Below are positions 30,698-64,000 of a stretch of 64,000 nt of DNA, piece by piece (position 1 is the stretch's first letter; each line of letters starts with the position of its first letter). Under the pieces are notes generated by a model. The model ran no database searches, was not told the origin of the DNA, and was given only the letters and a program-made list of their open reading frames with translations. The stretch is taken from positions 1-64,000 of the forward strand of contig JAXLNO010002638.1 of the NCBI GenBank assembly GCA_038087875.1, given 5' to 3'. Position numbers and translations under genes: made by a program. The stretch is from Malacoraja senta. Its lineage: Eukaryota.

Positions 30698-31164
30698 GGT
30701 TTAAGGTGAGGAGGAAGATTTAGTAGGAACCTGAGAGGCAACCTTTTCTACTAAGAGGTTACTGGGTGTATGGAATGAGCTGCCAGCGAAGGCAGAATAA
30801 CAACATTGAAAAGACACACTTGGACAGGTACATGGATAGAACATGTTGAGAGGAAAGTGGGCCAAACGCTGGCAAATGTGACTAACCTAAATGTAGCATC
30901 TTGTTCAGCTTGGAGTATTAGGGCTGAAGTACCTACTTCCATGCTATATGGCTCCATGACTCTTTGTTAGATGAACATAAACATGGCAAATGGAGTTTAA
31001 TAATGGAAAATATGTGCTCACACACTCTGGTAAGAGCAATTAAAAGAAGCTATTATCTAAATGGAGTGAGATTGCAAATGAGTGGAGTACAAGAGATTCA
31101 AGTGCTTAAAGTGCAAAACAAAAAGCCAGCAGGTAGATGCAGCACACAATGCAGAAGGTGAGTA

Positions 31165-31915
31165 GCATATTGGATTGTACAAAAATTCAAAAATTTTGGA
31201 TTGAAATTTTTGAAATCTTTACAAAATTATTTGAAATAAAACTGATACCAAAAGTAGAATGGATTATCTTCGGAACAACGGAAGATAGTCCTGAACTAAA
31301 TGTGTTTCAAAAGAAATTAATAGACTATGGGTTAATAACTAGAAAAAGTTAATCCTAAAATTCTGGAAAAATGCTCCAATACCAACTATAAACATGTGGA
31401 TTTCAAATATGTTCGAAACATTACACCTTGAAGAGATAAGACTCCTCCTGGCAGGTAAACCAGATCACTTCCACCTGACGTGGTCTGCATTCATAGAATT
31501 ATTACAAGTATAGGGTGCAAAAGTACTTTAAAAAAACAAAAAAAACTGAGGTCAGGTAAAGGGGGATGAAAGCTGGAGAGTTGGTATATCCCATTTGCGT
31601 GATGCTTATAACAAAGTATTTGTTTTTCTCTTTTTCCTCTTTTTCTTTTTTCTTCTTCTTTAGGGTCATTCTCTTAATCCTTTCTTTTTAATTTCTTTCT
31701 TACAGGGTCTCTGTTCTTTCTTGTTGTCACGTTTTCACACCTTCATTATTTTCCTTCACTTTCTCTTTTTTCTTAATCTCAACCTTTCCTTTTTATTAGT
31801 GTAAAAAATGATGGAGTACATTAATTGTAATAAGATATACGTGATGAGTACTAATGTAATTGGTTGTAATGTAATGTACTTCTAATTAAAAAAAAAATTT
31901 AAATAAAAAAAAAAG
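31165..31915 (+). mobile_element. L1-clade 3' fragment with T-rich UTR and A tail
   Basis: KFWIEIFEIFTKLFEIKLIPKVEWIIFG, homologous to the C-terminus of the 44970 ORF. Confidence 0.8.
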
Positions 31916-32604
31916 CATATTGACGTTCAAAGTGGGTTACTATTGTAATTATGGTACATGATGTTGCTAAGGACATATCAGGAGCACTGTGCACAGCTTG
32001 GTCCTCAAATTTAAGAAAGGATCTATTAATATTGGATATCAGCTAGAAGAGATTTCTGGAATAAGCAAGTGTTGCCTAACCATGAATGGCTGAAATCACT
32101 GGTTCTGTGTCCCTTGGAGATGATAAGAAACAGAGTTAACCTTATGAATGTATTAAAGAGGCATGATGTGGTGGTGAATTGATGGCTAATGCGTGGATAT
32201 ATTCTAAAAGAACAGGGAATTGTGTCTTATGTGGAATAAGCACAGTAAAGGAGTTGAGGCATCAGTCATATCAGTTGTTATCAACATAAATTGCTAGATA
32301 GCTCTAATTTGTACAAATACAGGGCAGTCTATTGAGAATTTCTGTCATGTTTGATAAACTTAATTTAACTCTTTCCATTTATTTCAGTTCCTGCATTTTA
32401 ATCACATCCATGAAATCTTCTACTCAGCGATTGGTTAGCAGTGCACGTTCTGTTTTGGTTGAATATTTTGATAATCTGAGGAGGGAAATTAAATATTCGA
32501 CAACAAAGAAATGGCACAGCAGAGAACAGAACTCAGAAAGATGCAACTAGTTTATTCGCTTTAACTGTTGATTCATCCCACATAACCTCTTCCTTCCAGA
32601 TATA

Positions 32605-43081: not shown

Positions 43082-43186
43082 CTCTCCTCTTTTTTCTCCA
43101 CCAAACAATTACTGCCAAGACAATAGCCAGCAATATCAGCACACACACGGCAATAAGGCCTATGTGCCTGTCTTTCTTCCTGTTTC
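43082..43186 (-). CDS. MHC class I-like gene, transmembrane exon
   Basis: ttatttttcacaag| acceptor, (G)NRKKDRHIGLIAVCVLILLAIVLAVIVWWRKKRR, G|gtaag donor; 105 nt, phase 1-1, in frame with alpha3. Confidence 0.8.
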
Positions 43187-43254
43187 CTTGTGAAAAATAA
43201 GAATGCATAATTTTACAAATCAATTGTTAAGCTGTGCAGCTAAATAGATGGGCA

Positions 43255-43985
43255 CTGTCTGAAGACTTCAGAGTGAAGAAGGGTCTCGACCCGAAATGCC
43301 ACCTATTCCTTTTCTCCAGAGATGCTACCTGACTGCTGAGTTACTCCAGCATTTTGTGTCTATCTTTGGCACTTTTCAAGGTATATAAGATGATATGGTG
43401 TTTTGAATCACGGAGTTCTGCAGCATAGCAAAGGGACAATATATGTTTTGTACAACTCTATGATCTATGGCACCATCACAGCCACAACTTAATTCAAGAA
43501 AGAAGGTGATTTGGAAGCAGAAAGCTTTAACCCTATATAAACTAACATTTGTTTTGGGGAAAATGCTGGATTCCTTTCAATAATGGCAGAACATTTAAAT
43601 AATAACTAAACAATAAAGTGCTTTATCAGGGCATTAACAGGAAAATTGTAGAAAGAAAGAGATGCAAATACTGATTTACACAAAAGCTTTAGTTTAGTTT
43701 ATTGTCACATGTATTGAGGTACAGTGAAAAGCTTTTGTTACGTGCTAATCAGTCAGTGGAAAGAATATACATGATAGACACAAAATGCTGGAGTAACTCA
43801 GCGGAACAGGCAGCATCTCTGGCGAACATGGATTCATCACCTATTCCTTTTCTCCAGAGATGCTGGCTGATCAGCTGAGTTATTCCAGCAATTTGTGTCC
43901 ATCTTCGGTGTAAACCAGCATTTGCAGTTTCTTCTTACACATGGAGAGGTGACGTTTCGTTTTGGGACCCTTCTTCAAACTTTGT
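43255..43985. mobile_element. Penelope-derived palindromic repeats (two clusters, 43255-43370 and 43775-43985)
   Basis: Same family as 3462-3585; degenerate hammerhead cores. Confidence 0.65.
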
Positions 43986-44929
43986 TTGAGAAATTGATTT
44001 GAATTCTTTGAAAATGCAACAGGAACCCGTAGACAATGTATATTCGAGCAGCAGGTGTGCAGTCTAAAATTCAAAAACAAAATGATGGAAAAGCAGAATA
44101 GGTAACAAAATTGGAATGAGAAACAAAAGAAATACAATATATTGTAGAGATCCAAACGTCGTGAACAAATCAATGTTTTTTTAAAGAAATACAGTTTTGG
44201 CCCACTCGCGTTTAGTAAGGACTTGAGCAAAGTTCCTGCCGTTGTAATCGGGCACACCAGTTGACTGCCGATTAACTCATCACCAACTCCCACCAAAACC
44301 CTGTCACATGATAGTCCCAGCTCCCCTGACGATGGTTCTAGCAATAAGTGGCCTGACCACCAGATGTCGCCACAATATCTGGATTTTCATAAGATATCAA
44401 TCAAGTGTTGCAAAGGCTTATGACATTGGGGGTAATAATTAGCATGAATGGAAAAAAACAATTAAGAGCAAGCAGAGAGTTGTCTTAAAGGAGTGTTCAG
44501 GTTGGGAAACTGCAACTGCAGGTTGGGAATCAATGCAAGAAAGTGAACTACTTATCGTTGGTATTAAGAGCAGATGAAGGGATTGATGGCGCTGTAGCCT
44601 AGATTGCTGATGATACATAGATAGGTTGGAAATTAAGTTCCTGGAGTATGTCAACAGTTTTCAGAGTGAAACATCAGATTCCTTAGTTGTGCATTGTTCG
44701 AGGGGATCTTCAAAAGTGGACATTTGTGTAGGTTAGTGCAGCATACCTGGAATCAAACTACCACGATCGCTGTTTGTCAGGCAGTTATATTTTTCGTTGC
44801 TGAATCTGTAACTTGCGTCATGGAACTTATTTCATTAGGTTTTGTTTTATTAATGCCAAATGTTTCAAGATACAGTGCAAAGGTTTGTTTTGTATGCTAT
44901 CCAAACAAATGATAAAACTATACATAAAT

Positions 44930-47369
44930 ACAAACCTTAGCTAGAAGACTAAGCAAATATATTAGTAAATTGATAAACCCTGATCAAACGGGGTTTATAC
45001 CCAAAAGATATTCATTTAATAATTTGAGACGCCTGTTTAATATAATGTACTCACATAAAAAGGAAGAAAAAGACTTAGCAATTATTTCTTTGGACGCAGA
45101 GAAAGCATTTGATCAGGTAGAATGGCAGTATTTATACATAGTATTACAAAAATTTAATATGGGAGAGAATTTTATTGCATGGGTGAAATTATTATATGAT
45201 AAACCGATGGCAAGAATATTAACTAACAGCATGTTATCTCAAAAATTTCAATTATCAAGGGGTAATAGGCAGGGATGTGCTTTATCACCCCTGCTATTTG
45301 CCCTTATGATAGAACCTCTGGCTGAAAGTATAAGAAGCCATCCGAATATTCAGGGTTATAATACTAGGGACTCAAATAATAAAATTTCATTGTATGCAGA
45401 CGATATTTTGTTATATATAACAAATTCACAAACGAGTATACCAAATTTATTAAATTTAATAGAGGAATTTGGGTCCTTTTCAGGATATAGAATAAATTGG
45501 AACAAAAGTGAAATTATGACGTTAAAACCTCAAGAATCCACACACTTATTGAAATTCCCCTTTAAAATAGCAACAGAAAAATTCAAATATCTGGGTATAC
45601 AGATTACTAGAAAACATAAAGCTTTATTCAACGCTAATTTTATACCCTTAATAAATAAACTTAATATAATGATAAAATTTTGGAAAACACTCCCTTTATC
45701 ATTAATAGGCAGAATAAATGCTATTAAAATGAGCTTCTTACCACAGTTATTATACTTATTTCAATCTATACCAGTATATGTACCAAAACATTTCTTCTCT
45801 AAACTGAATGCTAATATTACTAATTTTGTTTGGGATTACAAATCACATAGAATTAAAAAAGAACACTTATGTAAACCAAAAGATGTCGGGGGACTTTCAC
45901 TCCCTAATTTTTTGTATTACTATTGGGCAATACATATTAAGAATATAATTTACTGGTTGGATAGTTCAACTCAACAGACAGAATGGATAAAAATGGAGAA
46001 AGAGGATTGTTATCCTTGTAATATAGGAACAATCCTCTTCTCCCCGAAAAAAATGAACAATACAATATATAAGAAAAACCCAATTATACAAGATACAATA
46101 AGAATATGGAAACAAATAAAACTATCCTTAAAATTAAGAAACCTATCATTGTTAACACCGATAGCGAATAATCCTTTATTTAAACCATCTATGATGGATA
46201 AAATATATAATCAATGGGAAAGTTTAGGAATTAAAAGGATCGGGGATATGTATGAAATGGGAGATTTATTATCATTTCAACAATTACAATTAAAATTTAA
46301 ACTGAAAAACACTCATTATTTTAAATATTTTCAGATTTGTAATTTTTTGAAGACATACATACAGGGATATCAAAAAATAACTCCTGATTTACTAGAAGAA
46401 GTAATGAATATAAAAGCTGATACACAAAAATTAATAGCATATTTATATAATAGTATCTTAAATATAGATTTACCTGTGACCGAGGTAATTAGAGAAGAGT
46501 GGGAACGGGAATTATTGATAAAAATTACGAAGGCTACATGGGAAAAGTATTTGACATACATTCACAAGTGTTCGATTAACGCAAGACATAATCTAATCCA
46601 ATTTAAAATTTTACATAGATTATATTACTCAAAAACAAGATTAAATAAATTTTATCCAAATATATCGCCCATTTGCGATAAATGTTTAATCCAAGAAGCA
46701 ACTATAACACACTCTTTTGTTTCTTGTATAAAACTTCATGGATTTTGGAGTGATATTTTCGAAATATTTACAAAATTATTTAAGACAAAAATGGAACCCA
46801 ATAATGAATTGATTATATTTGGGGTAATGGAAGACGGGAACAAATTGAGCTCATCTCAAAAGTCAATTTTTAATTATGGTTTAATAATAGCAAAAAAATT
46901 AATATTGAAATTTTGGAAAAATACACCAATACCAACGCTCAAAATGTGGATTGCAAGTATGTTGGATACCGCACATCTTGACGAAATGCGATTCCTCCTA
47001 ATAGATAAATTTGACCAATTCATAACGAGTTGGTCTCCATTTGTCGTCTTTTTGGAAACGTATGGTGCAAAACAGGTGTAAAAGCTAATCCGTGACTGCG
47101 GATGGTCAAGATTATAAATGATCTCCTTCTATTTTCTTTTCTTCTTTTCTTTTCATTTATTCTCTTTCTTCTATTTTCTATGTCTCAACTTTCTTATTTC
47201 ATTCTTTATTTTTCTTTTTCACACACTATATATCTCACATTTTTCTATTTTTCATTATCTAACTTTTTTCTTTTTCTTCTTTATTTAAAAAAATTTAAAA
47301 AATAAGAAGCTGTACATAAAAGGTATTATGAAAATATGATTGTATACAATTGTACTTACTTCTAAAGAA

Positions 47370-47400
<31 letters not shown>
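44930..47400 (+). mobile_element. 5'-truncated L1-clade LINE with uninterrupted RT/C-terminal frame
   Basis: 703-codon ORF 44970-47081 (PDQTGF, SLDAEKAFD, RQGCALSP, LYADD, ICDKC..HSFVSC), T-rich 3' UTR, poly(A) at about 47365-47400. Confidence 0.95.
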
Positions 47401-47569
47401 ACAATAGATAGAGCAAAGAGGAGGATACAGAGTACAGAATATCGTTCTCAGCATTGTAACGCATCAGTTCCATGGACATTGTTCAATGTGCAATGAGGTT
47501 GCGGTGAATCGGGCATTAAACCTACATTATGGAAGGACCCTTCCGAAGCCTCTTAACAGATGGAAAGGG

Positions 47570-48000
47570 GGTGTTCCTGAGTGGCAGTGTATACTTTCAA
47601 CTTCCTGTACCTATTGCATGATGGGAGCAGGAAGGAGGAATGACCGGGGTGGGATAAGTCTCGTTTTCCAAGGCAACCTGGTGTAGACTGAATCAATAGT
47701 GGGAAGTCTGGGCTGTGTGATGATCTTTAACTCTTTGTATATTCTTGCAGTCTTGGGCAGTGCAGTTCCCAAATCAAGATGTGATGCAACCCAACAACAT
47801 GCTTTCTCTAGCAGCATCAATAGATGTTTGCTAGAGTCACCAGAGACATGATGAATATTCTCAGTCTCCTGAGGAAGTAGAGATGTTGGTGTGCCTCCTT
47901 GGCTATGTGGCCAGTCCATGACCGAATATTGGATATATTCATGCCAAGGAACATGAAGCTCTCAATCATTTCCACTTCGGACCATTGATTTGGATTGGGG
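47570..48000 (-). mobile_element. Rex1-like LINE fragment
   Basis: LGTALPKTARIYKELKIITQPRLPTIDSVYT, degenerate Rex1 C-terminus. Confidence 0.6.
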
Positions 48001-48332
48001 CATGTACTCCCCCAGTGCCTTGCTGTTAATCATATCATGAGGAAAGATTCATTTTTTATTTAAACATACCTTTCATGGATTTCAGTTCCACCACTGAGAA
48101 TCTCAAATACTCCTTCCTTGTATATTAGTTATTTATTTACTTTTGATAAATTTTCTGTTGACAAAGTCTTCTGCTCATGTGGAGAGTGGGTGCTGATTAT
48201 GTGATTGCTTAGAGCAACACCACTAAACAAAGAAAGTTTAAGCATCTTGGAATATGGGATGTAGTCACAATGATTAAAATGGAAACAACAGAAGATAATG
48301 ATTATCTATGAAAGAATATTTAACGTTCTTAC

Positions 48333-48599
48333 CCCAGATGATGGTCTTCCCATCGGGCAGGCTGCTGTGATCGACATGACAGGAATACTGTTTCCCATCA
48401 TACGGATCATACTCAAGGACAGACTTTAGATGATATGTTCCATCGTTGTTGGGTATGACCCCAGAAGATTTGGTCTCAGGGACATGTTGACCATTCTGCA
48501 ACCAGCTGACATTGATGGCTGGTGGGTAAAATCCAAACACAGTGCAGTACAGGACTGAATGATCATCAGGGCGGGCAGCGAGAGTGACCTCAGGGGAAA
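48333..48599 (-). CDS. MHC class I-like gene, alpha3 (Ig C1-set) exon
   Basis: cttactgtcttgtag| acceptor; (V)SPEVTLAARPDDHSVLYCTVFGFYPPAINVSWLQNG..PNNDGTYHL..YSCHVDHSSL..W; TGG G|gtaag donor; 267 nt. Confidence 0.93.
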
Positions 48600-49085
48600 C
48601 TACAAGACAGTAAGATGGTTATTTTCACCTTCATTAAAACTTCCACAGTCACCCACCACAAAATATTCTTCAGTCTACTACAACAAGCAAGTTACTGTCC
48701 ACATCTGCCCCATTTTGCCTCTATCGTCACCATCAACCAACCACGTGGTTTAAAAGGGATCATACGCTCCCTGTTAAGACAGTACACAACAAAGTTTGAA
48801 AGTACGTACCATTAAATTCAGGAGCAGTTTCTTCCCCACTGTTATTGGACTACTGAATGATTCTCATGTAAGATAAGATGTTGTCCTGATCTTCCAACCA
48901 ATCTCATTGTGAACCTTGCAACTCTTTTTGATCTGCACTTTCTCTGTAACTGTAATGCCATGATATTGTAAACCGATATTCTGCACTCTGAGTAGTTTTC
49001 TCTTTGCGCTGTTCTACTTGTGGATGGCTTGATTGCACATGTGTAGTATGATCTGATTGGATAACACACAAACTTTTGACTATAT

Positions 49086-49373
49086 TGTGGCGGCAGCCTA
49101 TACACGGGCCACTTATGCTCGAACCCTCGTTAGGAAGTACGAGGGCGGGCACGTGACGTCATGGGCTAGAGGGAGTGTCCTGGTACTTAAGGTCATCTCA
49201 CCTCGAGACCTTGAGGAGTTCAACCCGTAGCTGAGCCCGAGGGAACAACCTCGCTCAGCGACAGCAACACTGTTATGATAGTCGGCACCCACCTAACGTG
49301 TCAGCACTGAATAAACGACTCTTTGAACCGGCCTGACGTCTCACCTTTATTCACCACGTTTGGTGCCGCTACA
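49086..49373 (+). mobile_element. Solo LTR, probably Ty3/Gypsy-like
   Basis: TGTGGCGGCA...TGCCGCTACA terminal inverted repeats, 4-bp TSD ATAT, internal AATAAA; 288 bp. Confidence 0.8.
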
Positions 49374-50159
49374 ATATCTCAGTTCACGTGACAATAAAAA
49401 CTAATACCAACGGCAAATCTTTTCACTAGGGCACATTATTGACAATAATAAATAATTGACAAGTTACGAAATGAGGGCCAATTGGGGAGGGGCAAGCTTA
49501 AAATTGGCAGTATTTTCACTCCTCTTCAATAAGAGATAAAAGAGACCAGTCATTTGTTTACAAAATCTCTTTTTGCAGAGTGTGGTCATTCTCTGGCGCC
49601 AGAGATTTGTGAAGACAAAATCATTGGAAGTATTTAATGTGGCGGTAGTTAAACTTTTGAAAGATTTGAGAATTGAGTGCAATGAGGAACTGGCACCGAA
49701 CAGGAGTTGATGCCTGAGGAACGTCAGCCATGGTCATATTGAATGGTGGGCAGGTTAGAGGACCAAATGGCTTACTCGGAAACTTGATAACTGAGGAGAA
49801 AATCAGGCTTCTGAATGATCGTTCCATAAGCTAGGGTACTGTCCAATTGACCACTACCCCATTACAGACAGTGGACTTTGTTTATGGAACTATACAGGAA
49901 GGAACTGTAGATGCTGGTTTAAACCGCAGATAGACACAAAATGCTAGAGTAACTCAACGGGTCAGGCAGCATCTCTGGAGAGAAGGAATGTGTCACGTTT
50001 TGTGTCGAAACCCTTATCTAATGGAACTGGTGTACTACATTGCTGAGAACTATATGCCACACTCTGTACCTTCCCCTTTGCTCTACCTTCAGTACTTGAG
50101 TTGACTTGATCATATATATGTATGTTGTTATCTCATCCAATTGGATAGCATGCAACTAC

Positions 50160-50430
50160 CTGGAAAGTTGCTGCCTTACAGTACCACAGACCAAAGTTCA
50201 ATCCTGACAATGGGTGGTGTCTATATAGAGTTCATATATTCTCTCTGTGACCATGTGAGTTATCTCCGGGTGCTACAGTTCCGTCACATTCAAAGACGTG
50301 CAGGTTTGTAAGTTTTTTGGCTTCTGTAAATTGTCCCTAGTGTGTAGGATAGAACTAATATTTGGGTGGTCGTTAGTCAGCACAGGTTCAGTGGGCCAAA
50401 AGGCCTATTTCAATGCTGTACCTCGAAACT
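50160..50430 (+). mobile_element. V-SINE (HE1-like)
   Basis: Same SINE core. Confidence 0.7.
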
Positions 50431-52144
50431 AAACGTGACAATAATAATCCGAAACTTATCCCTGTGCCTATCTGTAGATTAGTGTCACTCATACTGTGGC
50501 TCCGCCCACAGGCTTATTAGACAGCTCTCTCTCTGGTAGACTGGTAGTAAGCATGCTGAGAAGAAAGCACCTTGTGTTTCCTCTGCAAAGTTACTAATAA
50601 CCACTATGTGTGAGGTTGATCATTCTTCCAACACTATCTCTTGTGTTGTTACGTCTCTGGAACTAAGTGGTAGCTGCGCTTAACTTTGTTGTAGCATAAC
50701 TGTTTATGCTGAACAATTCATGAAAAAAGTCTAAAAAGGATTAAAAAAACAAGTGATTCCAGCATGTTGAAAGATAATTGGGACTGATGCGTAATGGGTG
50801 GCACTGCGGCACAGTTCCAGTGACGAGGGTTCGGTCACAATCTTGAAACAGAAAAACTTAAACTGAGGCAGGCGCCTCAACTTCATCAATCCAGTGCTGT
50901 TATGACACTGAGCCTTAACATGAGAAAATTAGAAATTGGGTATTTCCTTAGGGCAAAATCATACTTCTCAGAGACTTGAAAGCTGCAAGATAGTACTGGA
51001 ATGTGGTGGATCTCTGCGTGCTGTTCCAGAAGAGGACGAATTGTACTTATGTACAGTATGACTTGACTGGGGAGAATGCAGAACAACCATTTCACTGCAG
51101 ATTGACACAAAAAGCTGGAGTAACTCAGCGGGACAGGCAGCATCGCTGGAGAGAAGGGACGGGGTGTCCAGCATCTGCTGTTCCATCCAAACCATTTCAC
51201 TGCATCTCTGCATGCATGAAAATAAACAGAGTTATATAAAATGCAGACATACTGCAGTACTCAAGTAGGTCAGGCTGTCATGATTTTGCTGGTGGATAAC
51301 TTTACTGTAATTAAAAAACACACAAAAACGTGCAGGTGTAACTCAGTGGTTCAGGCAGCATCTGGAAGACATGGTTATGTAATCTTTCAGCTTGGGATCC
51401 TGCTTCATACTTCTTGCATCTGTTCTTTCTGTCTTCAACTTAACAGTTGAAAGGACCAGTTCTTTTATCGACAGGGAATGCAACTTGTTGAATGTGGAAT
51501 TGAGTTTGAAAGGCTGCAACATGTCCAGACAGAAGCTGAGTTGTTTGTCCTCATGGACACTTTCACCCTTGTTAGCCTAGTGTAAGAGAAACAGATGGAT
51601 GGATCATGGTGGGTGTTGAATGGAGAATTAGAGTGGCAGGAATTAGGAATCTTAGAAAGTCCCATGGATTGAATGCAGGTTCTCCAGAAAGCAGCCATTC
51701 TATTTGTTTCATTGATGCAATGTGGAAGATTACGTCATGAAAACTAACTGCAGTAGATTTGACTGGAAGTCCAAGTGTTTCACGCTGTTTCACTTTGAAG
51801 AACTGCCTGGGTCTATGGAAAGTGGTAAATGGATAGATGTTGCTTGCACCAAGACAGGAAAGTAGAGGAAAGTTGTGGGGATAGTAGACAGACCAGGGAG
51901 CGAAAAAGGGAATGACTACTTCAAGATATAGAATGGGGAGCAGGGCAGGAGGGGAGGGAGAAATGGATTGACTAATTGAATCAGATTTAAACTGGGAGTA
52001 AGTATTCAACATGGAGGCTGGAGGAGTGGAAAACATATCCCTGCCCTGTCCAATGAGAATATATAGAACATAGAACAGTACAAGAACAGGACTTTCAGCC
52101 TGCAATGTCCATGTGGAACAGGATACCAAGTTAAACTAAGGCAA

Positions 52145-52430
52145 CACAGAGGCACAGTGATAGAGTGGCTGTCTTACAGCATTAGAGACCCGGGTTCGAT
52201 CCTGACTAGAGTGCTGTCTGGACGGAGTTTGTACGTTCTCTCTGTCACCCTGTGGGTTTTCTCTGGGGGCTCCGGTTTCCTCCCAAATACAAAAGACATG
52301 CAGGTTAATTGGCTTCTGTAAATTGTCCCTAGCTTGTAGGACAGAAATAGTGAATGGGCAATTGCTGGTCAGTGCAGACTCAGTGGCACAAAGGTGCTGT
52401 TTCCATACTCTATCTCTAAACTAAACCAAA
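52145..52430 (+). mobile_element. V-SINE (HE1-like)
   Basis: gacccgggttcgatcctgact..ggtttcctccca core. Confidence 0.75.
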
Positions 52431-52739
52431 ACTAATCTCCACTGCCTGCATGTGATCCATATCCTTGTATTCCCTGCATACCCACGAGCCTGTCCAAAAC
52501 TTTCTTAAGCACCATTATCATGTCCTCCTCTACCACCACTCCTGGTAGCGCATTCTAGGTATCAAGCTGTCTCTGTGCAAAAAAACACTTGACCTGCACA
52601 TCTCGTGTAAATTTTGCCCTTCGAAGCTTAACGCTGTGCTCTTTTGAGATGTGTGATAGACATGCAATCCCATTAGGGGCTGTCAACTGTGGTCAAGAAA
52701 ATCCATGGTTAACTAATATGAAAGACATCAATTGAATCA

Positions 52740-55085
52740 TACAAAATAGTGAAAGACTGTTTGCCTTTTGATATTGGTTCAATTATATTTGCTCCCACAA
52801 AATTGCATTAAAAAACCTATAGTGAAAATTCTATAATATATAGTGGTATACGAATTTGGAAACAATTAAAAAAGACTTTAAAATTGGATAATTTATCACT
52901 CTGTCTCCCCATTATAAACAACCCTTTATTCAAACCTTCCATGTTGGATAAAGGCTTTACACAATGGAAAAATTATGGAATTAAAAAGATGGGACATCTT
53001 TCTAGGAAATGCACTTTTCTTTCATTTCAGGAGTTACAACAGATTTACGGACCACACTCAAATAACTTTTTCAGATATTTACAACTTAAAGATTACATTA
53101 AATCAAATACACAAGATTACAGAACTAGGGAACCAGAAATCCTTGATGAATGTTTGAATAAACATCCTAATACAGAAAAATTAATATCTCATATTTATAA
53201 TACCCTCTTAGATAGTGAGGTCCCGCTGACGGATTTATATGGGAAAATGAATTAGGCCAACCCATAACGAAAGATATTTGGGACTAAAGTCTACAATATA
53301 TACATAAATGCTCGTTAAATGCCAGACATGCCTTAATACAATTTAAAGTATTACATAGATGACATTATTCTTAAACAAAATTAAATAGAATCTTCCCACA
53401 TATCTCTCCTATTTGTGATAAATGCCAGCATTTAGAGGTTAACTTAACTCATACCTTTGTAAATTGTATACAAATCAAAAATTTCTGGAAGGACATTTTC
53501 AGAATAATTTATGAAGTAGTCAATAATAATAATAATAATAATTATAAATTTTATTTATGGGCGCCTTTCAAGAGTCTCAAGGACACCTTACAGTATTTAA
53601 CAAGTAAAAAAACATATAATCGGAGTAAAATAAATAGTAAAGACATCACCAATAGACAAATTAAAGACAGAATTCGATCCAAAAACAAAAAAATCAGAAA
53701 CACAATGTGACGAGAGAGCAGCGGCAGCTAAACCGCGCCAGCGTACACTCTCCCTTCCAGCAGCCATCTTGGACACAGACTAAAATAATCACTAACACAC
53801 AGAAATCATCCCCCCCACTGGATGGTTACCACTGTGGGGGAAGGCACAATGTCCAGTCCCCATCCCCAGTTCTCCCAAAGTCAGGCCTATTGAGGCCTCA
53901 GCTATTGCCTCTACGGAGGCCCGATGTTCCTGGCCGTTCTCGCCGGGTGCTGTTGCCCCGGCGTCGGGAGAGTCCTCTCAGCGGCTGGGCCACCTGGAAC
54001 AGCCGCTTCCCTACCGAAGTCCGCGGCTTCCGAAGCCGACAAGGCCGCGCCGGTTTGGAGCTCCCAGACTCCCGATGTTGATGTCGGCACCGCCCGCTCC
54101 ACTCCGCAGACCCGCAGCCCGGAGGTGTTGACCTCGGCAGTCACAGCTCACCGGAGCTCCTGCGCGTCGATCCAGCGTGGCGACCCAGGCAAGGCATCGC
54201 CCGCTCCAGCGCTATGCCGCCACCGAAGCCGAGGTGCTGGGCGGTCCCCTCCAGGAAAACGGCGCTCCACGCCCGCTGGTAGGCCACGAGGACGGGTCGA
54301 CGGGGCAGCCCGGAGAAAAAGCTGCCTCACCGACCAGGTAGGGACCTAGAAATATAGTTACCCCCTTCCCCCTACATTAAAAAGTCTATTTCTCCCACAA
54401 ACAGGACTCACTAGAACTACAAAAAAAAGTGAATTAAACGGACAGCTGCTGACCTAGCAGCCGTTCCCCAAGATGGCCCCTCCCCTTCTGGATCCCGACT
54501 CAAAACTAATAATATTAGGAATATCAGAACAAAGCCTAAGCCTTATAATAAACCAAAGAAACGTTTTTGATTATAGTATAATAATTGGGAAAAATTAATA
54601 TTAACATTTTGGAAAGGTCCTATAACCCCCACAATTAAAATGTGGATTATGGAAATATCAGAGACCTTACATTTGGAAAGAACTAGACTTGTCTTAATTG
54701 ACAAACATGAATTATTTAATAGAATATGGTCTCCATTTATTGATTTTTTGAAAGGGTAAATTGGTTCAGCATGGGAATCTGACTGAAATCCAAGCTCAGG
54801 ATTAGATGAATAGTTATGCTTTATAACCTACGGACCTATCTCCAAAGTTGTATTATTGGCAAATTATTCCATTCTTCTTTATCATGCCTTTTTTTAAATT
54901 TCTCACTTTCTATCTATAAAAAAATAAAAAAATAAATAGAAGCAGATTTAATATACAATTGATAAATGAGGACCACTATTATTTTGATAGCTGGACTCCC
55001 ACCTATTAGCAAAGTAGGATTGATATATAAGAAATGTTTGTATTATGATATGCACATGCTTCTAATAACAATATTTTTTTTTAAA
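52740..55085 (+). mobile_element. L1-clade 3' fragment interrupted at 53522-54477
   Basis: IRIWKQ..NLSLCLPIINNPLFKPSMLDK..ICDKC, homologous to the 44970 ORF; resumes after the insert. Confidence 0.8.
53522..54477 (-). mobile_element. GC-rich non-autonomous retroelement with L2-like 3' tail
   Basis: Minus strand ends tgtaaggtgtccttgagactcttgaaaggcgcccataaataaaatttat(aat/tta)n; non-coding GC-rich body. Confidence 0.65.
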
Positions 55086-55089
55086 CAAA

Positions 55090-55430
55090 CAAATAGTGAA
55101 AGGCTTGGATAGATGTGGATGTGGAGAGGATGTCTCCAATGGTGGGAGAGTCTACGACGAGAGGTCATAGTCTCAATATTAAAGGACATTCCTTTAGGAA
55201 AGAGATGAGGAGGAATTTATTTTGTCAGAGGGTGGTGATTCTGTGTAATTATTTGCCACAGAAGGCTGTGGAGTCCGTCAATGGATATTTTTAATTCTTG
55301 ATTAGTATGCACGTCAGGGGTTATGGGGAGAAGGCAGGAGAATGGGGTTAGGAGGGAGAGATAGATCAGCCATGATTGACTGGCGAAGTCGACTTGATGG
55401 GCCGAATGTTCTAATGCTGCAGCCATTACT
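55090..55430 (+). mobile_element. CR1 3' end
   Basis: FRKEMRRNLFCQRVVIL.. plus tail. Confidence 0.75.
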
Positions 55431-55731
55431 TATGACCTTATGACTCAGTTGGCTTCCTCCATGTGCTCCAGTTTTGTCCAATATACCAAAAACATGCCGG
55501 TGAGTTAGTTGGACATTGCAAATTATCCGTCGTGGAGCTGAATGCAAGGAGAATCCGAGGGAGCTGAGTGCAAGTTGTGAGAGAGAGCTGTGGAACAGTT
55601 TGTCGACATTGCATAGAAAACTAGCATAGAATCAATGGGCCGAATGACCTTTCCCTCTGTCATGATTGGGTCAGAGATAATATTACTCATTGCCTACCAT
55701 CACAAAACAACATCCTTTGTTCTGAACTCAC

Positions 55732-56007
55732 CTTTTCTGGTCAGGTATGTCTTTCCAATTGCATAGTATGTAAGCCATAGATCCACACAGTCATGTTCTA
55801 ACAAGCTCTTGAAATAACGGTTCATTTTTTCATTCTTGTCCCATTTCTCTTTGAAGGGCTCAGCTATTGGATCATGCACCGTCCACTTTAGCTTGTCCTT
55901 ATCAAAACTAAATGCATATCTTCCATCAAAAGCCAACTTCAATATCCCTACAGTGGGACTGTGATCGTTCACCTCACAACCAAACTGTCCTTGAACGTAG
56001 TGATAAT
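55732..56007 (-). CDS. MHC class I-like gene, alpha2 exon (nonclassical)
   Basis: atttttatttcag| acceptor, 276 nt, G|gtgag donor. DYHYVQGQFGC..AFDG..W..KEKW..LLEHDC..YYAIGK; Cys pair 63 residues apart as in C101-C164. Confidence 0.93.
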
Positions 56008-56164
56008 CTGAAATAAAAATAAAAATCATTATTTGATTAATTGTTATGACTGGGTAATTTCTGAACACCAGGGTCCAAGTCATTTATATATGTCACAAGT
56101 ATCAAGGGTCACAGCACAGATCCCTGCAGAACTCTACTTGTCACTGAACTACAGCCTGAATATT

Positions 56165-56600
56165 TGGCCTTCCGTACAACTGTAGAGACCATATTATTGT
56201 ATGGGTGTGATGCATGGACTCTCACTCCAGCACTGTCCTAGTCTCTCGATGGTACCTACACCCGAATGCTCGGAAAAGTTCAAAATGTCAGATGGAGGGA
56301 CCACATCACCAACGCCCAGCTCTATGGGGAGAATCCACCTCTGACCGAGAAGATCACGTTGAGAAGGATGAGGCTCGCAGGTCACTGGCTCCGCCACCCA
56401 GAAATGCCAGCGAACAAGGTTGTGCTGTGGGAACCCACCCATGGAAGACTTGACCCAGGATGGCCAATCAAGACGATGGTGAAGACGTTGATGGAAGACG
56501 CATGTGTAGAGACAAAAGAGGAGCTTGCCAGTTGCATGGAGGAGAGATGTGTGGTGCGTCCGTCACCGTGCCCGTCGGAAACCAGCACGGCACTAATGTT
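56165..56600 (+). mobile_element. RTE-clade LINE 3' fragment
   Basis: FRTTVETILLYGCDAWTLT..YTRML..NVRWRDHITNAQLY..RRMRLAGHWLRHPE. Confidence 0.8.
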
Positions 56601-56744
56601 TTCAACGATTATCATTATCATCCACTACACCCCTCTGTCCTGGGGATTTATCCACATTTCTCTTCAAGTGATCCAACATCTCCTTCATGCTTAACTTCAA
56701 AGTGTCCCTGCATGTTAGCATTCTCCACATTGATTCTCCATGTG

Positions 56745-57530
56745 TAAGAAAGAACTGCAGATGCTGCAAATGTTAAAATCGAAGAGAGACACAAAATGCT
56801 GGCGTAACTCAGCGGGTCAGGCAGCTTCCCTGGAGAGATGGAATGGGCATTGTTTTGGGTCGAGACCCTTCTTCAGACTGATGTCAGGGGAGGGACAAAG
56901 ATAGAATGTCGGCGGAGACAGTAAGACTGGTGGCAGAATTGGGAAGGGGGAGGGGATGGAGAGAGAAATCAAGGGCTATCGAAAGTTATAGAAGTCAATG
57001 TTCATACCGCTGGAGTATAGACTACCCAAGCGAAATATGAGGTGCTGTTCCTCCAATGTGGGCTGGGCCTCACTCTGACAATGGAGGAGGCCTAGGACAG
57101 AAAGGTCAGATTGGGAATGGGAGGGGGAGTTGAAGTGCTGAGCCACCGGGAGATCGGGTAGGGTAAGACGGACTGAGCGGATGTGTTCAGCAAAACGATC
57201 ACCGAGCCAGCGCTTGGTCTCACTGATGTAGAGAAGTTGACAACTGAAACAGCGGATACAGTAGATGAGGTTGGAAGAGGTGCAAGTGAACTTCTGCCTC
57301 ACCTGGAAAGACTTTAGGTCCTTGGACGGAGTCGAGGGGGGACGTAAAGGGACAGGTGTTGCATCTCCTGCGGTTGCAGGGGAAAGTATCCAGGGAGCGG
57401 GTGGTTTGGGTGTGAAGGGACGAGTTGACTAGGGAGTTTCGGAGGGAACGGTCTCTGCGGAAAGCAGAAAGGGGTGGAGATGGGAAGATGTGACCAGTAG
57501 TGGGATCCCGTTGGAGGTGGCAAAAATGTT
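56745..57530 (-). mobile_element. Penelope-like element fragment: GIY-YIG endonuclease plus terminal repeat
   Basis: FTCTSSNLIYCIRC..LLYISETKRWLGDRFAEH..VAQHFN..EQHLIFRLGSL..GMN, followed by a terminal sequence with a hammerhead-like core at 56878-56850. Confidence 0.9.
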
Positions 57531-57689
57531 GGAGGATTTTATGATGTACTTACTATTAATGGTCCTTACTATTCTACATGTCTTCCTTGGTGAAACCAAA
57601 CCTCGCCTATATCCACAAACTCCAGGCACATATTCCCTTCTATATCCTTAAGCAATCCACCTTTTGTTGCAATGGTTGCCTCGCCAACA

Positions 57690-58345
57690 GTATGTCTGTC
57701 CCTTCCTTCTTTGTGTCCGTTTTGTACGTGTTAAATGTATATTCTTTAGTGTTCTTTAGCTTGTTTTGGGGGGGGGGGAGTTGTGGGAAACTTTTCCTAA
57801 TCTCTTACCTCGACGTTGATGCGATATTTTCTGTATCGTATCTCCGTCCACAATGCGGCCTAACATTGAGGAATGGCGGCCTTTGCTAGAGATCGACCGG
57901 GAGCTCCATCGCAGGAGCCTGTGGACTTACCATCATGGAGCTCGCAATCCCTGTCGGGGATCGACTTTAGGGTTCCAACTGTGAGAGCCTGCAAGACTTT
58001 AACATCGCGGAGCCCGCGGTCCTCGGTCGAGACCAACATCCGGGATCTCCAAGCCGCAGGAGTTTCGACCGCTCCGATGTGGGAGTTTCGATTCCCCAAC
58101 GGGGGTTTCGACTACCGACTGCAGATTGTTTGACTGCCCCGACCGCGGGAGATAAAGAGGAAGGACATTAGACTTTATTGCCTTCCATCACAGTGAGGAA
58201 CGTGCGGTCTCCTCTGTTGTGGATGTTTATGTTAACTTTTATGTTATTGTGTGTCTTGTTGCTTTTTTTTGTATGGTGTATGGTAGTCTGCATTTCAATG
58301 TACCTTAATTGGTATATGTGACATTAAACTAACCATGAAACCTTG
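57690..58345 (+). mobile_element. GC-rich non-autonomous retroelement
   Basis: CpG-rich body, GCCTTCCATCACAGTG core, AT-rich LINE-like tail (..ggtatatgtgacattaaac). Confidence 0.55.
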
Positions 58346-60934
58346 AAAAAGATGTGGGATTTTCTGTAATCCGACTCACTAAAGCCACTTTGTGGCCTTT
58401 ATTAGCCCCTTTAGTTTTAAGCTTTAGAGGAGTGGTTCTTAATCTTTTTTGCCCCCGACCCCATCAGGCATTCTTGATCAGTACCATGACCTCTGAAACA
58501 AAATTTGAAAAAAAACAGCCCGATTTATTAAAACATGTCAGCCAATGCTCAGTCAATGGGATGGCTGAAATTGCTTCGCAGTCATCAGGCAATCAAAACG
58601 AGCACGAATGCTCGACAGGCAGCATCTCATGTCAATCACAAGCCTATTGCGTACCTTCGTTTTCAGAGTTACCATAGTTGAGAATCCACCCTCACAGTGA
58701 GAGGTTGAGGGGGACTGGACCAATAGGGTCAGGGCCCTCTTCGAAAGAGCAGGACAGTCCTTCACTTTCAGCCAAAACGTGGCGAGCTGTTGTTCCATGA
58801 AGTCACTCTTGAGCTGCGCATCTTCACGAATTCGGTAAAATTCAACCTTCGCAGTTACGTCAGTATCACTGATGCCACCGTCTTCAACGGAAAAGGGACG
58901 GATGATCAACTGATCACGAGAGCGGTCGTCCAGTCCGGGGAAGTAACGTTCGATGGCTTCACTAATTGCCAGAAGGTGGGTTGAGATCTCCTCGTGGAAG
59001 TGGCATTCAGCATCAGGCGTAGCATCCAGGAGAGTCATCATCTCAGGGAAGATAGCCGTGTCACCATCGTGGACTCTTCTCTGGTAAAGGTTCCTCCTGA
59101 ATGCTGCCACTTTGTCACGAGCCGTGTGTAGCATTGGGATGTTTCCTTGAAGTGACAGGTTCAAGGAATTCACCTCAGCGAAGAAGTCAGCCAAGTAAGC
59201 AACCTTCATCACGAACAGTTCAACCTGCATCTTTTCATGAAGCTGATTCTCCTTCTCAGTACACCTTCTCTCCAAGAATAACGCTATTTCCTCTCAACGT
59301 TGAATCACATGATTGAGAACTTTACCACGCAAAAGCCAGCGCACCTCTGTGTGGAATAACAGAATAGTGAAATCGGCGCCCATTTCTTCACACATCGCTT
59401 TGAAGATTCTTGAGTTTGTTGCGCTCTGTCGGATGTGGTTCACAATCTTCACCACACCTGAAAACACTTCTAGAAGACCAAGAGGGAGAGTCTTCATCGC
59501 TAAAGCAAGGCGATGTATCATGCAGTGGGGGAAGGAGACATGTGGAGCGACATCATTCACGAAGGCTTGGAAACCGGATCTGCAACCGACCATGGAAGGT
59601 GCCCCAACTGTACACATCCCGACAAGGCATTCCCAGCCAAGCTCATGTTTGATGAGGAAGGCTTCCAGCATTCTGAACACATCTTCTCACCGAGTGGCAG
59701 TAGCCAATGGCTCCGAGAACAGGTACTTCTCCATTGAGGTAACGAACGTAGACTAGCAGTTGGGAACATGAGGCAACATCTGTTGACTCGCCCAGTTGCA
59801 GTGAATACACTGGATTGCTCATCACAGCCCTCACTACTTGCAGCAGAATATCATTACTCATATCCGAGATTCAACTTTTAACTGTTTAATTCAAAATGGA
59901 AATCTGCCTGAACTTGTTTGACTGCTCTTCCCCAGCACCAATTTCGCTGTTTCGAGAAGGCGTGGCTTGATAAGCTCTTCACCGATGGTGTGAGGTTTCT
60001 TAGTCTGTGCGATTCGATAAGCAATCTGGTATGAAGCCTCCAACGCTGCTTCATTTTGATGAGCGCAGTGACCCGTTGAATACATGCGAGAACCCTTGAG
60101 TACGGCTTCTTTTCGTTTGAAATAGTCCACGCTCTTTTTCGCCAGGTTACTGTGACAAGACTCCAAATGGATCTTCAGTTTGCTGGGCTTCATGCTCTCG
60201 TGACTCTAAACCTTGGCACAGAGAACACATCGCGGCTTGACCACGGATTTTGAACAATGCTTGTGAAGCCCAACTTGAGAAATGTTTCACTATACGTGCG
60301 CGTCTTGGAAGACATGGTTCACAACACACACTGTTTGTGCGTGTATACGCAGGGCCTCAGAGGAATTTTATCAGTGGGTACAAAGTTTCTTTTGGGCCCC
60401 CTTCCCTTCTCCATTAGTCATCCTGTTTTTATCCGCTATGCTACAGTTTTATGCCATGAGCTGTAGCCTGCACGGCAAAAAGGGGTATGGAAGATTAGTG
60501 AGGGGTGGAATGGGGCGCTCTGTTGATTTTTTGCATTTGAGGCCTTATGCCCCTATACACCCTCCATGATAAATATAAATAAGTATAAATAACATAAAAG
60601 GATCAGAAAGCACATTTGTTTTCCTTCACTCTATAGATGCTGCCTCACCCGTTGAGTTTCTCCAGCATTTTATCTAGCTTTGTTTTGAACATCTTTGTTT
60701 ATGCTACAATACAAATAAGGAGAAAGAATTCACATTGAAACATCCTTTTATGTTTCAATGCAGATCATATCATCAAAAGACATAATTATTAGTAAAAAGT
60801 AAAAGTTTTACTTTTATTATATAAATTTACTTTATATAAAGAGCTTTGCTGGCCTTTTTTGTGAAAAATGTCAAATCACAGCATGAAAATGTATTGTTCT
60901 GGCAATGTTTGATTCAATACTATTGATTCAATAC

Positions 60935-61410
60935 GTTGACACCGTGGAGCTGTGGTCTGCGGAGCTTCTAGCCGCGGGCGTGGCATGGACTTACCATCCG
61001 GAGTCTGGGATCCCTTGCCGGGGATCACCAGAGACGAGCTCGAACCGCTGGCCTGCGGCCTATAAGATCCTGAAGCTGCGGTCTCCAGTAGGAAAGTGCC
61101 GAGTCGGGACCTCCAAGCCGCAGAGTGTGTTTGTCCGTCCCAACGTCGGAGTTTGGATCATCCTGACGAGAGTGCCTTGTACATCGGTCCGTCCCTAGAT
61201 GCGACTACGGAGGGGTTATGGCCCCGAACACGGGTGAACAAAGGAGGAGGACTGGCTGAAACGTGTTGCCTTCCACCACAGTGAAGAATGCTGTAGTGAA
61301 TGTTTGTGTTCAATTTTATTGTGTATTGTGTGTTTTTTAACGTGTATCACTGCTGGCAAATTCATTTCACTGCACCTTCGTGTGTATGTGATGAATAAAA
61401 CTGACTTTGA
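60935..61410 (+). mobile_element. GC-rich non-autonomous retroelement inserted in the nested hAT transposase remnant
   Basis: GCCTTCCACCACAGTG core; Rex1-like tail (ttcactgcacc..gtgatgaataaaactgactttga). Splits ..LARLSI|ESNIAR... Confidence 0.65.
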
Positions 61411-62039
61411 ATACTTAGCCTGGCCAAATCCACAAGACGTTCATGAGACATTGTCGACCTTAAATAATTCTTAATCAGCTTGAGTTTGCTAAATGACATC
61501 TCTGCAGAAGCTACTGTTGCTGGAATTGTTAATAGTATTCTGAAGCTAACACAAACATTTGGAAACAGGTTACCAAGTCAATAGTCTGTTAACAAGTTCA
61601 ACAGATCTAATGGTTTTAACTTCATTTATAAAATTCACCCTCCCACTAACACACATACACTCAGACACACACTCACTCACCTACTCACATACACCCACAC
61701 ACATCCACACACACACACACACCCTCACCCACTCACTCACACCCACCCATCCACACACTGACCCAAACCCAGGCACGGACCACTGAAACAGCCGCGGCTC
61801 CTGACTCTCACCACCTCCCCGGGCGAGGCCACCGCAGCCACTGTCGCCGACCTTCACTGTCTTCAGAAAGCCAATGATGCTGCTGCCTATATCTCTACTC
61901 CAGCTCCCCACGGGCCTCCACCAGCGACTCTGCCGACCCTCGCCTCTCCACCTGCCACCAGCGGGCCAGAGCCGTCACCTCACCAGAGTTCCCAGCATAG
62001 CACCAGGCCCACAACCTAAACCATGCAGACAGCACATGG

Positions 62040-62540
62040 TCTGATTGCTGGCTCCTAGTGCTCCCCCCCCCTCCTGCAGGGAAGATCCATCAGTAGTGAT
62101 GACTCTGTTGGGTCCTAGTGCTCTCCCCCCTCTCTATCCTACAGGGAAGATCCATCAGTAGTGATGACTCTGCTGGCTTCTAGTGCTCCCCCCTCCCTCC
62201 TACAGGGAAGACCCATCAATAGTGATGACTCTGCTGGGTCCTAGTGCTCTCCCCCCTCCTACAGGAAAGAACCATCAGTAGTGATGACTCTGTTGGGTCC
62301 TAGTGCTCTCCCTCCTCCTACAGGGAAGATACATCAATAGTGATGACTCTGCTGGGTCCTAGTGCTCTCCCCCCTCTCTATCGTACAGGGAAGAGCCATC
62401 AATAGTGATGACTCTGCTGGGTCCTAGTGCTCTCCCCCCTCCTACATAGAAGATCCATCAGTAGTGATGACTCTGCTGGGTCATAGTGCTCCACCCCCGC
62501 GCCCTCCTACAGGGAAGATCCATCAGTAGTGATGGGTCTT
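62040..62540. repeat. About 60-bp minisatellite (gtagtgatgactctgctgggtcctagtgctctcccc..cctacagggaagatccatca), about 8 copies
   Basis: Direct inspection. Confidence 0.9.
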
Positions 62541-63034
62541 CCCCTTCCCCCTCTTTTAATCAGGTTACCCCGACCACACACCCGCCAGTTAAAATTCCCT
62601 GCTGTATTACGGATCACAATTTCTACGAATTACGATATATAAAACTCTGAAGGCACAAAATGTGAATGCTAGTCTTCACAAAATATATGTAAACATTTTC
62701 TGAGATTTCACGAAATTCCCACTCCCCCCCTCCTTCAGCTCCAGGGCTCCTATTGGACTCTGGGCCCGGGTACGATGTACCCCCTGCACCCCCCCTCTCA
62801 TAGGCCCTATGTATATGTAAGCGCATACGTGAACAAAATACTGTGTGTGGTATGTACCTTTGTTAGGTTCCTCAAAATAGGCTCAACAAATTGATGTTCT
62901 TTACAACCCCTTCATGACCCCCGGAAAAACCCCAAACGGCCCCCATGGGGGTCATGACCCCCAGGTTAAGAACCACTGCTTTGGAGATACAGTGCTGAAA
63001 CAGGCCCTTCAGCTCACACTAGGGACAATTTACA

Positions 63035-63175
63035 ATTATACCAAGCCAATTTACCTACATCTCAGAGAAAAGCCACACAGGTTACGGGGAGAACATGCAA
63101 ACTCCGTACAGTCACCACTCGTAGTCGGGTTCAAACCCGGGTCTCTGGTGCTGCAAGGCAGCAACTCGTGTAAGG
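63035..63175 (-). mobile_element. V-SINE (HE1-like), partial
   Basis: Reverse complement of the SINE head (gacccgggtttgaacccgact..ttgcatgttctcccc). Confidence 0.65.
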
Positions 63176-63535
63176 CCACGATCTCTTGGCTTTGCTTATA
63201 GTTATTATCATGTTTTATCTTCTATTGTGTTCTTTTTGCTTATTGCATATAAACAAATGTAAAGCTGCACATAAGGTTGGATCTTTTCGAGGCCCGAGCT
63301 GCCCCATCTTTTACCACAGATATCTATATTTAGAGAAACATAGATATAATAAGGTCACCCCTCATGGGCATTGAAGGCTCCATATTTCTATAAAATATGG
63401 AGACCATTAAGCTGTTCACTGCCAAGTTTATTTTTCACTATTGGCCATGATCCCTAGTGTACTCGGCGGTGGCATTGAACAGGTTAAGGATATCCAGTGA
63501 TGTGTAGCTGCGCTACCCTTCCTTGGTATTTTTAA

Positions 63536-63761
63536 GGGCCTGTCCCACTTACGTGTCCTTGGCACACAAATTATGCGACCTCGTGGTGGCGTTGAGGCTC
63601 ACGGGCATCGTATGGCCGCGCGGGACCGGTCTCACTGAGAAGCGCGGAGGGGTATGTAGTTGTGCGCGACATCGCGCGGGGCTCCAATAATTTTGTAGTG
63701 AATGAAATCTTCGCGCGCCAACGGCCTGTCGCGGAACTGACGGCCAAAGTGGGACAGGCCC
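63536..63761. mobile_element. MITE with 15-bp TIRs (possibly PIF/Harbinger-related)
   Basis: GGGCCTGTCCCACTT ... AAGTGGGACAGGCCC; TSD not clean (taa vs aag). Confidence 0.75.
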
Positions 63762-63899
63762 AAGACCCTGGCGCGACGCAATGTCTCACTTTCAACAGGA
63801 GCAGAAGCAGGCGAACGATCGCCGAACTCGGCCTGGGGCTCACGGCCGTTGCAGTCCGGATCCGCCCCCACTTCTACTCCAAGAGAGGGGCCAAGAAAA

Positions 63900-64000
63900 T
63901 TGAAGATAGACACGAAATGCAGGAGTAACTCAGCGGGACCAGCAGCATCTCTGGAGAGAAGCAATGGGTGATGTTTCGGGTCAAGACCCTTCTTTTCAGA
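63900..64000 (-). mobile_element. Penelope-derived repeat (truncated by window end)
   Basis: gagtaactcagcggg..gcagcatctctggagagaa..gtgatgtttcgggtcaagacccttc. Confidence 0.65.

Follow-up and report, generated by a model that had tools for sequence, protein, structure and literature searches.

The 64,000-nt stretch of Malacoraja senta DNA analyzed here (assembly GCA_038087875.1, contig JAXLNO010002638.1, positions 1 to 64,000 of the forward strand; the whole stretch is called the window below) carries on its minus strand the back half of a heavy-chain gene of class I of the major histocompatibility complex (MHC). The gene is orthologous to UGA, which forms a lineage of nonclassical class I (MHC-Ib) genes in elasmobranchs, and is its skate representative. 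Of its six exons, numbers 3 to 6 lie in the window, namely alpha2, alpha3, the connecting peptide with the transmembrane (TM) segment, and the cytoplasmic tail with the 3' untranslated region (UTR). The original prediction, made from the letters alone, had proposed a nonclassical class I lineage of cartilaginous fish, either described or new, and it is the described one. We assign a probability of about 0.85 to the full reading, namely that this is a UGA ortholog with a greasy, lipid-type groove and an endosomal tail.

Identification of the gene as UGA

Membership in the MHC class I superfamily follows from the Pfam scores of both extracellular domains, which lie above the respective cut-offs. 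The alpha2 exon alone matches MHC_I (PF00129) at 2e-13 (50.7 bits, cut-off 28.3), and the alpha3 exon matches C1-set (PF07654) at 4e-20 (72.4 bits, cut-off 21). Among solved structures, the top match for both alpha2 (E 4e-35) and alpha3 (E 5e-34) is PDB chain 9ch4_A, with approximately 68% identity. The entry 9CH4, released on 2026-03-18, is entitled 'Crystal structure of shark nonclassical MHC CLASS I, UGA'. The next matches of alpha2 (Anolis, MR1, chicken, ZAG) are found near 1e-12, approximately 22 orders of magnitude weaker. A HMMER search over 1.84 billion representatives yielded three strong matches, one to a protein of Leucoraja erinacea, with 95% identity in alpha2, and two to Pristiophorus proteins (71-72%).

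The direct skate orthologs are 95.3% (Amblyraja radiata XP_032898133.1, 341 aa) and 92.6% identical to the window product over 215 aa, and are likewise divided into six exons separated by very long introns. The Amblyraja introns are collinear with the window at 82-94% DNA identity. The tail is YQNIQPKQNVHC in the window and YQNIPPNQNVPC in Amblyraja. When the Amblyraja ortholog was modelled with AlphaFold (AF2; pLDDT 89.6), the model again had 9ch4_A as its best match (Z 29.2, 58% identity, Foldseek E 7e-38). Orthologs of the window gene are annotated in RefSeq in many elasmobranchs.

In the maximum-likelihood trees, built on the alpha2-alpha3 region, the window sequence is found in a skate clade (support 100/99) nested in a batoid clade (100/99), which in turn lies in a UGA clade of 16 sequences (100/100). 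The UGA clade follows the split between sharks and rays and includes the Stegostoma protein P0172, approximately 88% identical to the crystallized 9ch4_A chain. Other shark class I rows, unlabelled as to lineage, group with class I of bony vertebrates (96/88), apart from the UGA clade. The top match to 9CH4, the 95.3% identity to the Amblyraja protein and the position in the tree therefore identify the gene as the skate ortholog of UGA and not as a new lineage.

The window gene and the crystallized chain belong to a batoid (skate) and an orectolobiform shark, respectively. They share the groove residues F99, L114, F143, K146, W147, L159, L160, L167 and Y171, and both have a short tail with a tyrosine motif of the YxxPhi type (Tyr-x-x-hydrophobic), although the skate tail consists of 13 residues and ends in Cys, compared to five residues in sharks. 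The connecting peptide encoded in the window is one residue shorter, due to a shifted splice acceptor (see below).

No second class I gene was found in the window by tblastn with UGA paralogs, proteins of the UGA-sister lineage and chimaera class I proteins as queries. The five other class I proteins used matched the same exons only, in agreement with the original statement that the window contains no other MHC gene.

Exon structure

The three phase-1 exons listed in the original prediction, in frame, with canonical splice sites and free of stops, are indeed present on the minus strand, and their splicing yields 215 open codons. The alpha2 exon (56007-55732, 276 nt) is preceded by the acceptor AG at 56009-56008 (...tttcAG) and followed by the donor GT at 55731-55730 (GTgagt). 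The alpha3 exon, encoding an Ig C1-set domain (48599-48333, 267 nt), has AG at 48601-48600 and GT at 48332-48331, and the exon of the connecting peptide and the TM segment (43186-43082, 105 nt) has AG at 43188-43187 and GT at 43081-43080; the donor following each of these two exons is GTaaga. Each of the two domains has its disulfide pair (FGC...DC in alpha2 and YC...SC in alpha3).

While tblastn with full-length relatives recovered just these three exons, a motif search added a fourth, last coding exon, also on the minus strand (32475-32435, with the acceptor AG at 32477-32476, ...cctcAG). Its product is the cytoplasmic tail D-YQNI-QPKQNVHC, which ends at the stop codon TAA (32437-32435). The codon of the first tail residue, D, spans the junction and takes its G from the TM exon, and YQNI (32472-32461) is the YxxPhi motif found in this search. 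The 3' UTR (28938-32434, minus strand) is delimited by the extent of the blastn match to the cDNA L003 of a close relative, the match being interrupted by window-specific insertions, and contains AATAAA near 32382.

The exon borders can be compared with two spliced mRNA contigs from the RNA-seq data of this relative, L003 (3455 nt) and L004 (1992 nt), whose alignment to the window consists of four blocks. The ends of the blocks match the predicted borders at 55732, 48333, 43082 and 32477, the alpha2 block being aligned at 56005-55732, and nothing in the window matches the first approximately 415 nt of both contigs (5' UTR, leader and alpha1). Such an exon set is far beyond chance. Moreover, the dN/dS ratio is 0.35 overall and 0.19 in alpha2, and the visible back half of the heavy chain is thus shown to be under purifying selection. 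The intron between alpha2 and alpha3 is 7.1 kb here vs 20.4 kb in Amblyraja.

Position of the 5' end

The remaining part of the window, 56008-64000, corresponds on the minus strand to the 3' part of the alpha1-alpha2 intron, with no run of N and no alpha1 or leader exon. In particular, a tblastn search of 56008-64000 with full-length orthologs (word size 2, E up to 10) found neither alpha1 nor the leader. In Amblyraja radiata (locus L001) the same gene consists of six exons spread over 78 kb, and its alpha1-alpha2 intron is 11.3 kb long; the sawfish gene has the same six-exon layout with an intron of 4.7 kb in this place. The length of the orthologous skate intron, 11.3 kb, would explain the absence of alpha1 from the window, which extends just 8 kb upstream of alpha2.

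According to collinear anchors, position 61,359 of the window corresponds to position 48,773 of L001, and alpha1 ends at position 42,143 of L001, 6.6 kb further. The end of the window is still inside the collinear Amblyraja intron, and alpha1 and the leader are therefore expected beyond base 64000, by collinearity approximately 4 kb or more past it. The original prediction had suggested to look for them beyond 64 kb, which fits both the length of the orthologous intron and the search in the window, as a predicted location.

Residues of the binding groove

The residues of alpha2 were compared with those of a classical molecule using the ungapped HMMER alignment to the Anolis class I chain 7cpo_A. 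All changes named originally are reproduced in this computed alignment (T143>F, Y159>L, W167>L, Y123>A, D122>Y, Q115>K), as are the retained residues K146, W147 and Y171. Further changes are seen at Y99, H/Y114, Y116 and Y118, replaced by Phe, Leu, Leu and Phe, respectively. Thus, non-polar aliphatic or aromatic residues occupy many positions that bear hydroxyl or charged groups in classical molecules, and the groove set F99, L114, L116, F118, A123, F143, L159 and L167 is hydrophobic both in comparison with 7cpo_A and across the family. Six of the hydrophobic residues, F99, L114, F143, L159, L160 and L167, are conserved between skates and the crystallized shark chain, and the replacements of T143 by Phe and of Y159 by Leu extend across the UGA lineage, with the single exception of Ser143 in the sawfish paralog Pristis_c. 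The latter paralog also lacks Y59 and W60.

The situation in alpha1 can be judged from the orthologs, where Y7 and Y59 are kept and position 84 is occupied by Arg in skates and by Lys or Gln elsewhere. Hence, only a part of the classical anchor set (Y7, Y59, R/Y84, T143, K146, W147, Y159, Y171) is lost: T143 and Y159 are replaced, and the others are retained. In the trees, the gene does not group with the classical-type class I of sharks and bony vertebrates.

Relation to CD1 and other class I molecules

The likeness of UGA to CD1 lies in the hydrophobic groove, as predicted from the residues, and in the YxxPhi tail, which would fit endosomal sampling. The differences are that UGA keeps Y7, Y59, K146, W147 and Y171, and that, as seen in the sawfish, it is linked to the MHC. 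The CD1-type Pfam domain MHC_I_3 (PF16497, cut-off 35 bits) scores 17.2 bits on the alpha2 exon and 29.8 bits on the Stegostoma protein, and yields no match on the Amblyraja and Pristis UGA proteins, whereas MHC_I scores 50-84 bits. In the structural comparison, CD1 is found at rank 35 in the VIA list, and CD1c at rank 20 among the Swiss-Prot models (22% identity).

The hydrophobic groove, the YQNI tail and the weak MHC_I_3 matches are the observations that would speak for a true CD1 ortholog or for a new, undescribed class I lineage. Either is very improbable, given the fully supported position inside the UGA clade, the RefSeq orthologs in many elasmobranchs, the MHC_I_3 scores of 17.2 to 29.8 bits, all below the cut-off, as opposed to those of MHC_I, and the low rank of CD1c. 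Both candidates were rejected from the placement in the tree, built without CD1 sequences, together with the Pfam scores. UGA thus resembles CD1 in its predicted groove and its tail, and, as judged from these sequence comparisons, is not a member of the CD1 family. The description of the gene as reminiscent of CD1 in the original prediction holds in this sense for the groove chemistry and the sorting tail, but not for family membership, the sequence being nearer to classical class I and MR1.

The best structural neighbors outside UGA are the entries of chicken YF1*7.1 (PDB 3P73, 9EB2-9EB6), with Z 26.0-26.5 and approximately 30% identity. YF1*7.1 combines an ordinary class I sequence type with a hydrophobic groove; it represents an independent avian lineage, and no orthology is implied. 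With the model of the Amblyraja ortholog as the query, the YF1*7.1 entries at ranks 2-8 hold N-acyl amino acids or a myristoylated peptide.

A second lineage, found in rays (Leucoraja XP_055486430, Pristis P0186) as well as in sharks, is sister to UGA (support 93/79), and its genes are located on the same contigs as UGA. It has the LNHG and GFHGI-KG motifs and Leu159 in common with UGA, but is only approximately 40% identical to the window product and forms a clade of its own (100/99). Its proteins have a TM segment and a tail of another type, which lacks the YxxPhi ending. Under which name the lineage has been published, UFA or another, is uncertain. Three class I proteins of the chimaera Callorhinchus milii (P0029, P0217, P0231) group with the clade comprising UGA and its sister lineage (96/88), and not with other class I proteins. 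This placement hints that the parent lineage could be older than the split between elasmobranchs and holocephalans.

Proposed ligand and route of presentation

In CD1b, CD1c and CD1d, a tyrosine motif of the tail drives the passage through endosomes, and YQNI is the same tail motif as in human CD1b. Among the UGA proteins compared, a YxxPhi tail motif is present in 12 of 15, in the forms YQNI, YQTI, YENI, YESI, YNAV, YNVI, YNTV and YNVV.

A possible mechanism can be outlined on this basis. The heavy chain would fold as a class I molecule with beta2-microglobulin, and the groove formed by alpha1 and alpha2, with Phe, Leu or Ala in place of Tyr99, His114, Tyr116, Tyr118, Tyr123, Thr143, Tyr159 and Trp167, would hold a lipid-like ligand instead of a standard peptide. 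The YQNI tail may send the molecule through endosomes, where the ligand would be loaded, and the ligand might then be displayed to T cells in the manner of CD1 or chicken YF1*7.1.

To our knowledge, CD1 occurs only in tetrapods. UGA and its relatives thereby bear on the question of when lipid presentation to T cells arose, and, should UGA indeed bind lipids and sample endosomes, this presentation would be pushed back to early jawed vertebrates. The UGA lineage itself, its structure, its likeness to CD1 and the annotated orthologs in related skates are already on record. The window contributes one more skate ortholog, with the hydrophobic groove residues and the tyrosine tail conserved between skates and sharks. 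The points that remain of interest are the partly kept anchor set and a possible frameshift allele (see below).

In a 2025 review (PMC12562908) both UFA and UGA are called CD1-like, and a personal communication cited there reports that a crystal structure and mass spectrometry suggest binding by UFA/UGA of lipids comparable to those of human CD1d. Moreover, an unpublished CD1-like, lipid-binding lineage, UFA, has been mentioned in the same cluster (PMC10751288). From the groove residues, we infer that the product of the window gene would bind lipid as well. The non-peptide, possibly lipid ligand of the original prediction is consistent with the groove chemistry and with the personal communication in PMC12562908, and is qualified by the partial retention of the anchors.

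Ligand type and integrity of the copy

Several observations weigh against the full reading, that is, an intact UGA gene with a lipid-type groove and an endosomal tail. Two of them concern the ligand. Firstly, its type is derived from the personal communication in the review and from residue chemistry. Secondly, the orthologs keep Y7, Y59, K146, W147 and Y171 (and R84 in skates), unlike CD1, so peptide-like or acyl-peptide ligands are possible. The other three concern the copy itself. The alpha1 and leader exons of this copy are outside the window, and their intactness is thus unproven. Logan contigs of other public runs carry a 2-bp deletion in the alpha2 exon, at 55856-55858. Finally, the runs X4, X5, X6 and X8 behaved as DNA, with contigs crossing exon-intron borders.

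The first group of observations leads to the alternative that the molecule presents peptides, acylated peptides or amino acids, similar to chicken YF1*7.1 or Mamu-B*098, rather than lipids of the CD1d type. In addition to the residues retained in alpha1 and alpha2, this alternative agrees with the fact that chicken class I, YF1*7.1 and MR1 come closest outside UGA, both by sequence and by fold, CD1 ranking far below them, and that YF1*7.1 entries with N-acyl amino acids take ranks 2-8. At the same time, T143 and Y159, replaced by Phe and Leu lineage-wide (bar Ser143 in Pristis_c), are absent from the anchor set, and the ranking by fold reflects mostly the overall class I similarity and not the content of the groove. 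We regard this alternative as possible, though unlikely, and prefer the lipid-type groove. Still, the retained end anchors and the YF1*7.1 neighbors suggest that a ligand might be accommodated in which an acyl chain is joined to a small polar head, the latter being gripped by these anchors.

The second group raises the question of whether this copy of UGA is functional. Two differences from related sequences should be considered here. The acceptor of the TM exon, CAG/AAG in Amblyraja with splicing after CAG, is changed to CAC-AAG in the window (43187-43192), and, as CAG became CAC, an acceptor 3 nt downstream, after AAG, must be used. The shift keeps the frame and costs a single residue, the Glu that separates alpha3 from the connecting peptide (W-G-N-R vs W-E-G-N-R in relatives); the TM exon in the cDNA of the relative starts at the position equivalent to 43189.

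The 2-bp deletion hits the Pro codon of E-P-F-K-E-K-W. It accounts for the entire depth in X5 and X8, and for 1321 of 5912 in X4. The contigs bearing it have two mismatches in 533 nt compared to the window, and in X5 25 nt are additionally inserted in the intron at 55678. The deletion shifts the reading frame in alpha2, and the protein would therefore be truncated; the deletion marks either a null allele or a second gene copy that is dead. The window sequence does not have the deletion, and all four visible exons in it are intact.

One could thus suppose that the copy in the window no longer works and is a UGA fragment or pseudogene, be it a dead duplicate or a null allele, in view of the absence of alpha1 and the leader from the window, the mutated usual acceptor of the TM exon, and the deletion in near-identical contigs. 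Each of these observations has a counterpart: the 11.3-kb intron of the ortholog explains the missing alpha1, as the window ends inside this intron; the acceptor is shifted by exactly 3 nt, in frame; and the deletion is absent from the window sequence. Moreover, none of the four visible exons is interrupted by a stop, their splice sites are usable, and the dN/dS values (0.35 overall, 0.19 in alpha2) point to constraint. A dead copy is hence decidedly unlikely, and a functional UGA gene is preferred.

A more speculative proposal, which we consider improbable as well, though somewhat less so than a dead copy, consists of two separate parts. Instead of being a simple counterpart of CD1, UGA may have specialized in acylated amino acids or lipopeptides, like chicken YF1*7.1, using the kept end anchors and a greasy middle of the groove, and, separately, the 2-bp frameshift may segregate as an allele. 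In the latter case UGA would be dispensable in some individuals.

Genomic neighborhood

The genomic setting of UGA can be seen in the sawfish, where the ortholog P0165 is located on CM019888.1 (chromosome 34) at 14.02-14.06 Mb and corresponds to LOC127585887. In the supplement of Verissimo et al. 2023 (PMC10751288) this locus bears the label MHC-Ib and is flanked by BRD2/B2M (13.03-13.09 Mb, with B2M at 13.08 Mb) on one side and by COL11A2/RXRB/HSD17B8 (15.1-15.6 Mb, with COL11A2 at 15.13 Mb) on the other, and a cluster of GPR139-like genes is situated beside the sawfish UGA genes. The region 13.96-14.22 Mb of Pristis pectinata chromosome 34 encodes three proteins of the UGA clade (P0165, P0171, P0174), one of which is Pristis_c, UGA being expanded there.

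A GPR139-like receptor gene is present in the window as well, as an intact single-exon open reading frame (ORF) of the rhodopsin family on the minus strand (1962-1057), identified by tblastn with the Leucoraja protein P0151 (51% identity, E 7e-93) and matching Pfam 7tm_1 at 6e-22. It is a neighbor of the class I gene, separate from it. In Leucoraja, too, a GPR139-like gene adjoins the UGA gene. By analogy, the GPR139-like neighbor in the window fits an MHC-Ib neighborhood, MHC linkage being shown in the sawfish only.

The Leucoraja erinacea proteins P0152, P0153, P0155 and P0169 are the RefSeq isoforms X1-X4 of LOC129716032 (574-663 aa), in which the UGA heavy chain is fused to the adjoining GPR139-like receptor, probably because the gene models read through from one gene into the other.

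Two introns of the window gene contain additional ORFs. In the alpha1-alpha2 intron, two adjacent ORFs of 240 and 128 aa (58553-59680, minus strand) have no Pfam match and are absent from the orthologous Amblyraja intron, being probably a transposon remnant. In the intron between the alpha3 and TM exons, a 703-aa ORF on the plus strand (44970-47081) matches RVT_1 (1.6e-31) and zf-RVT, and belongs to an element of the LINE type.

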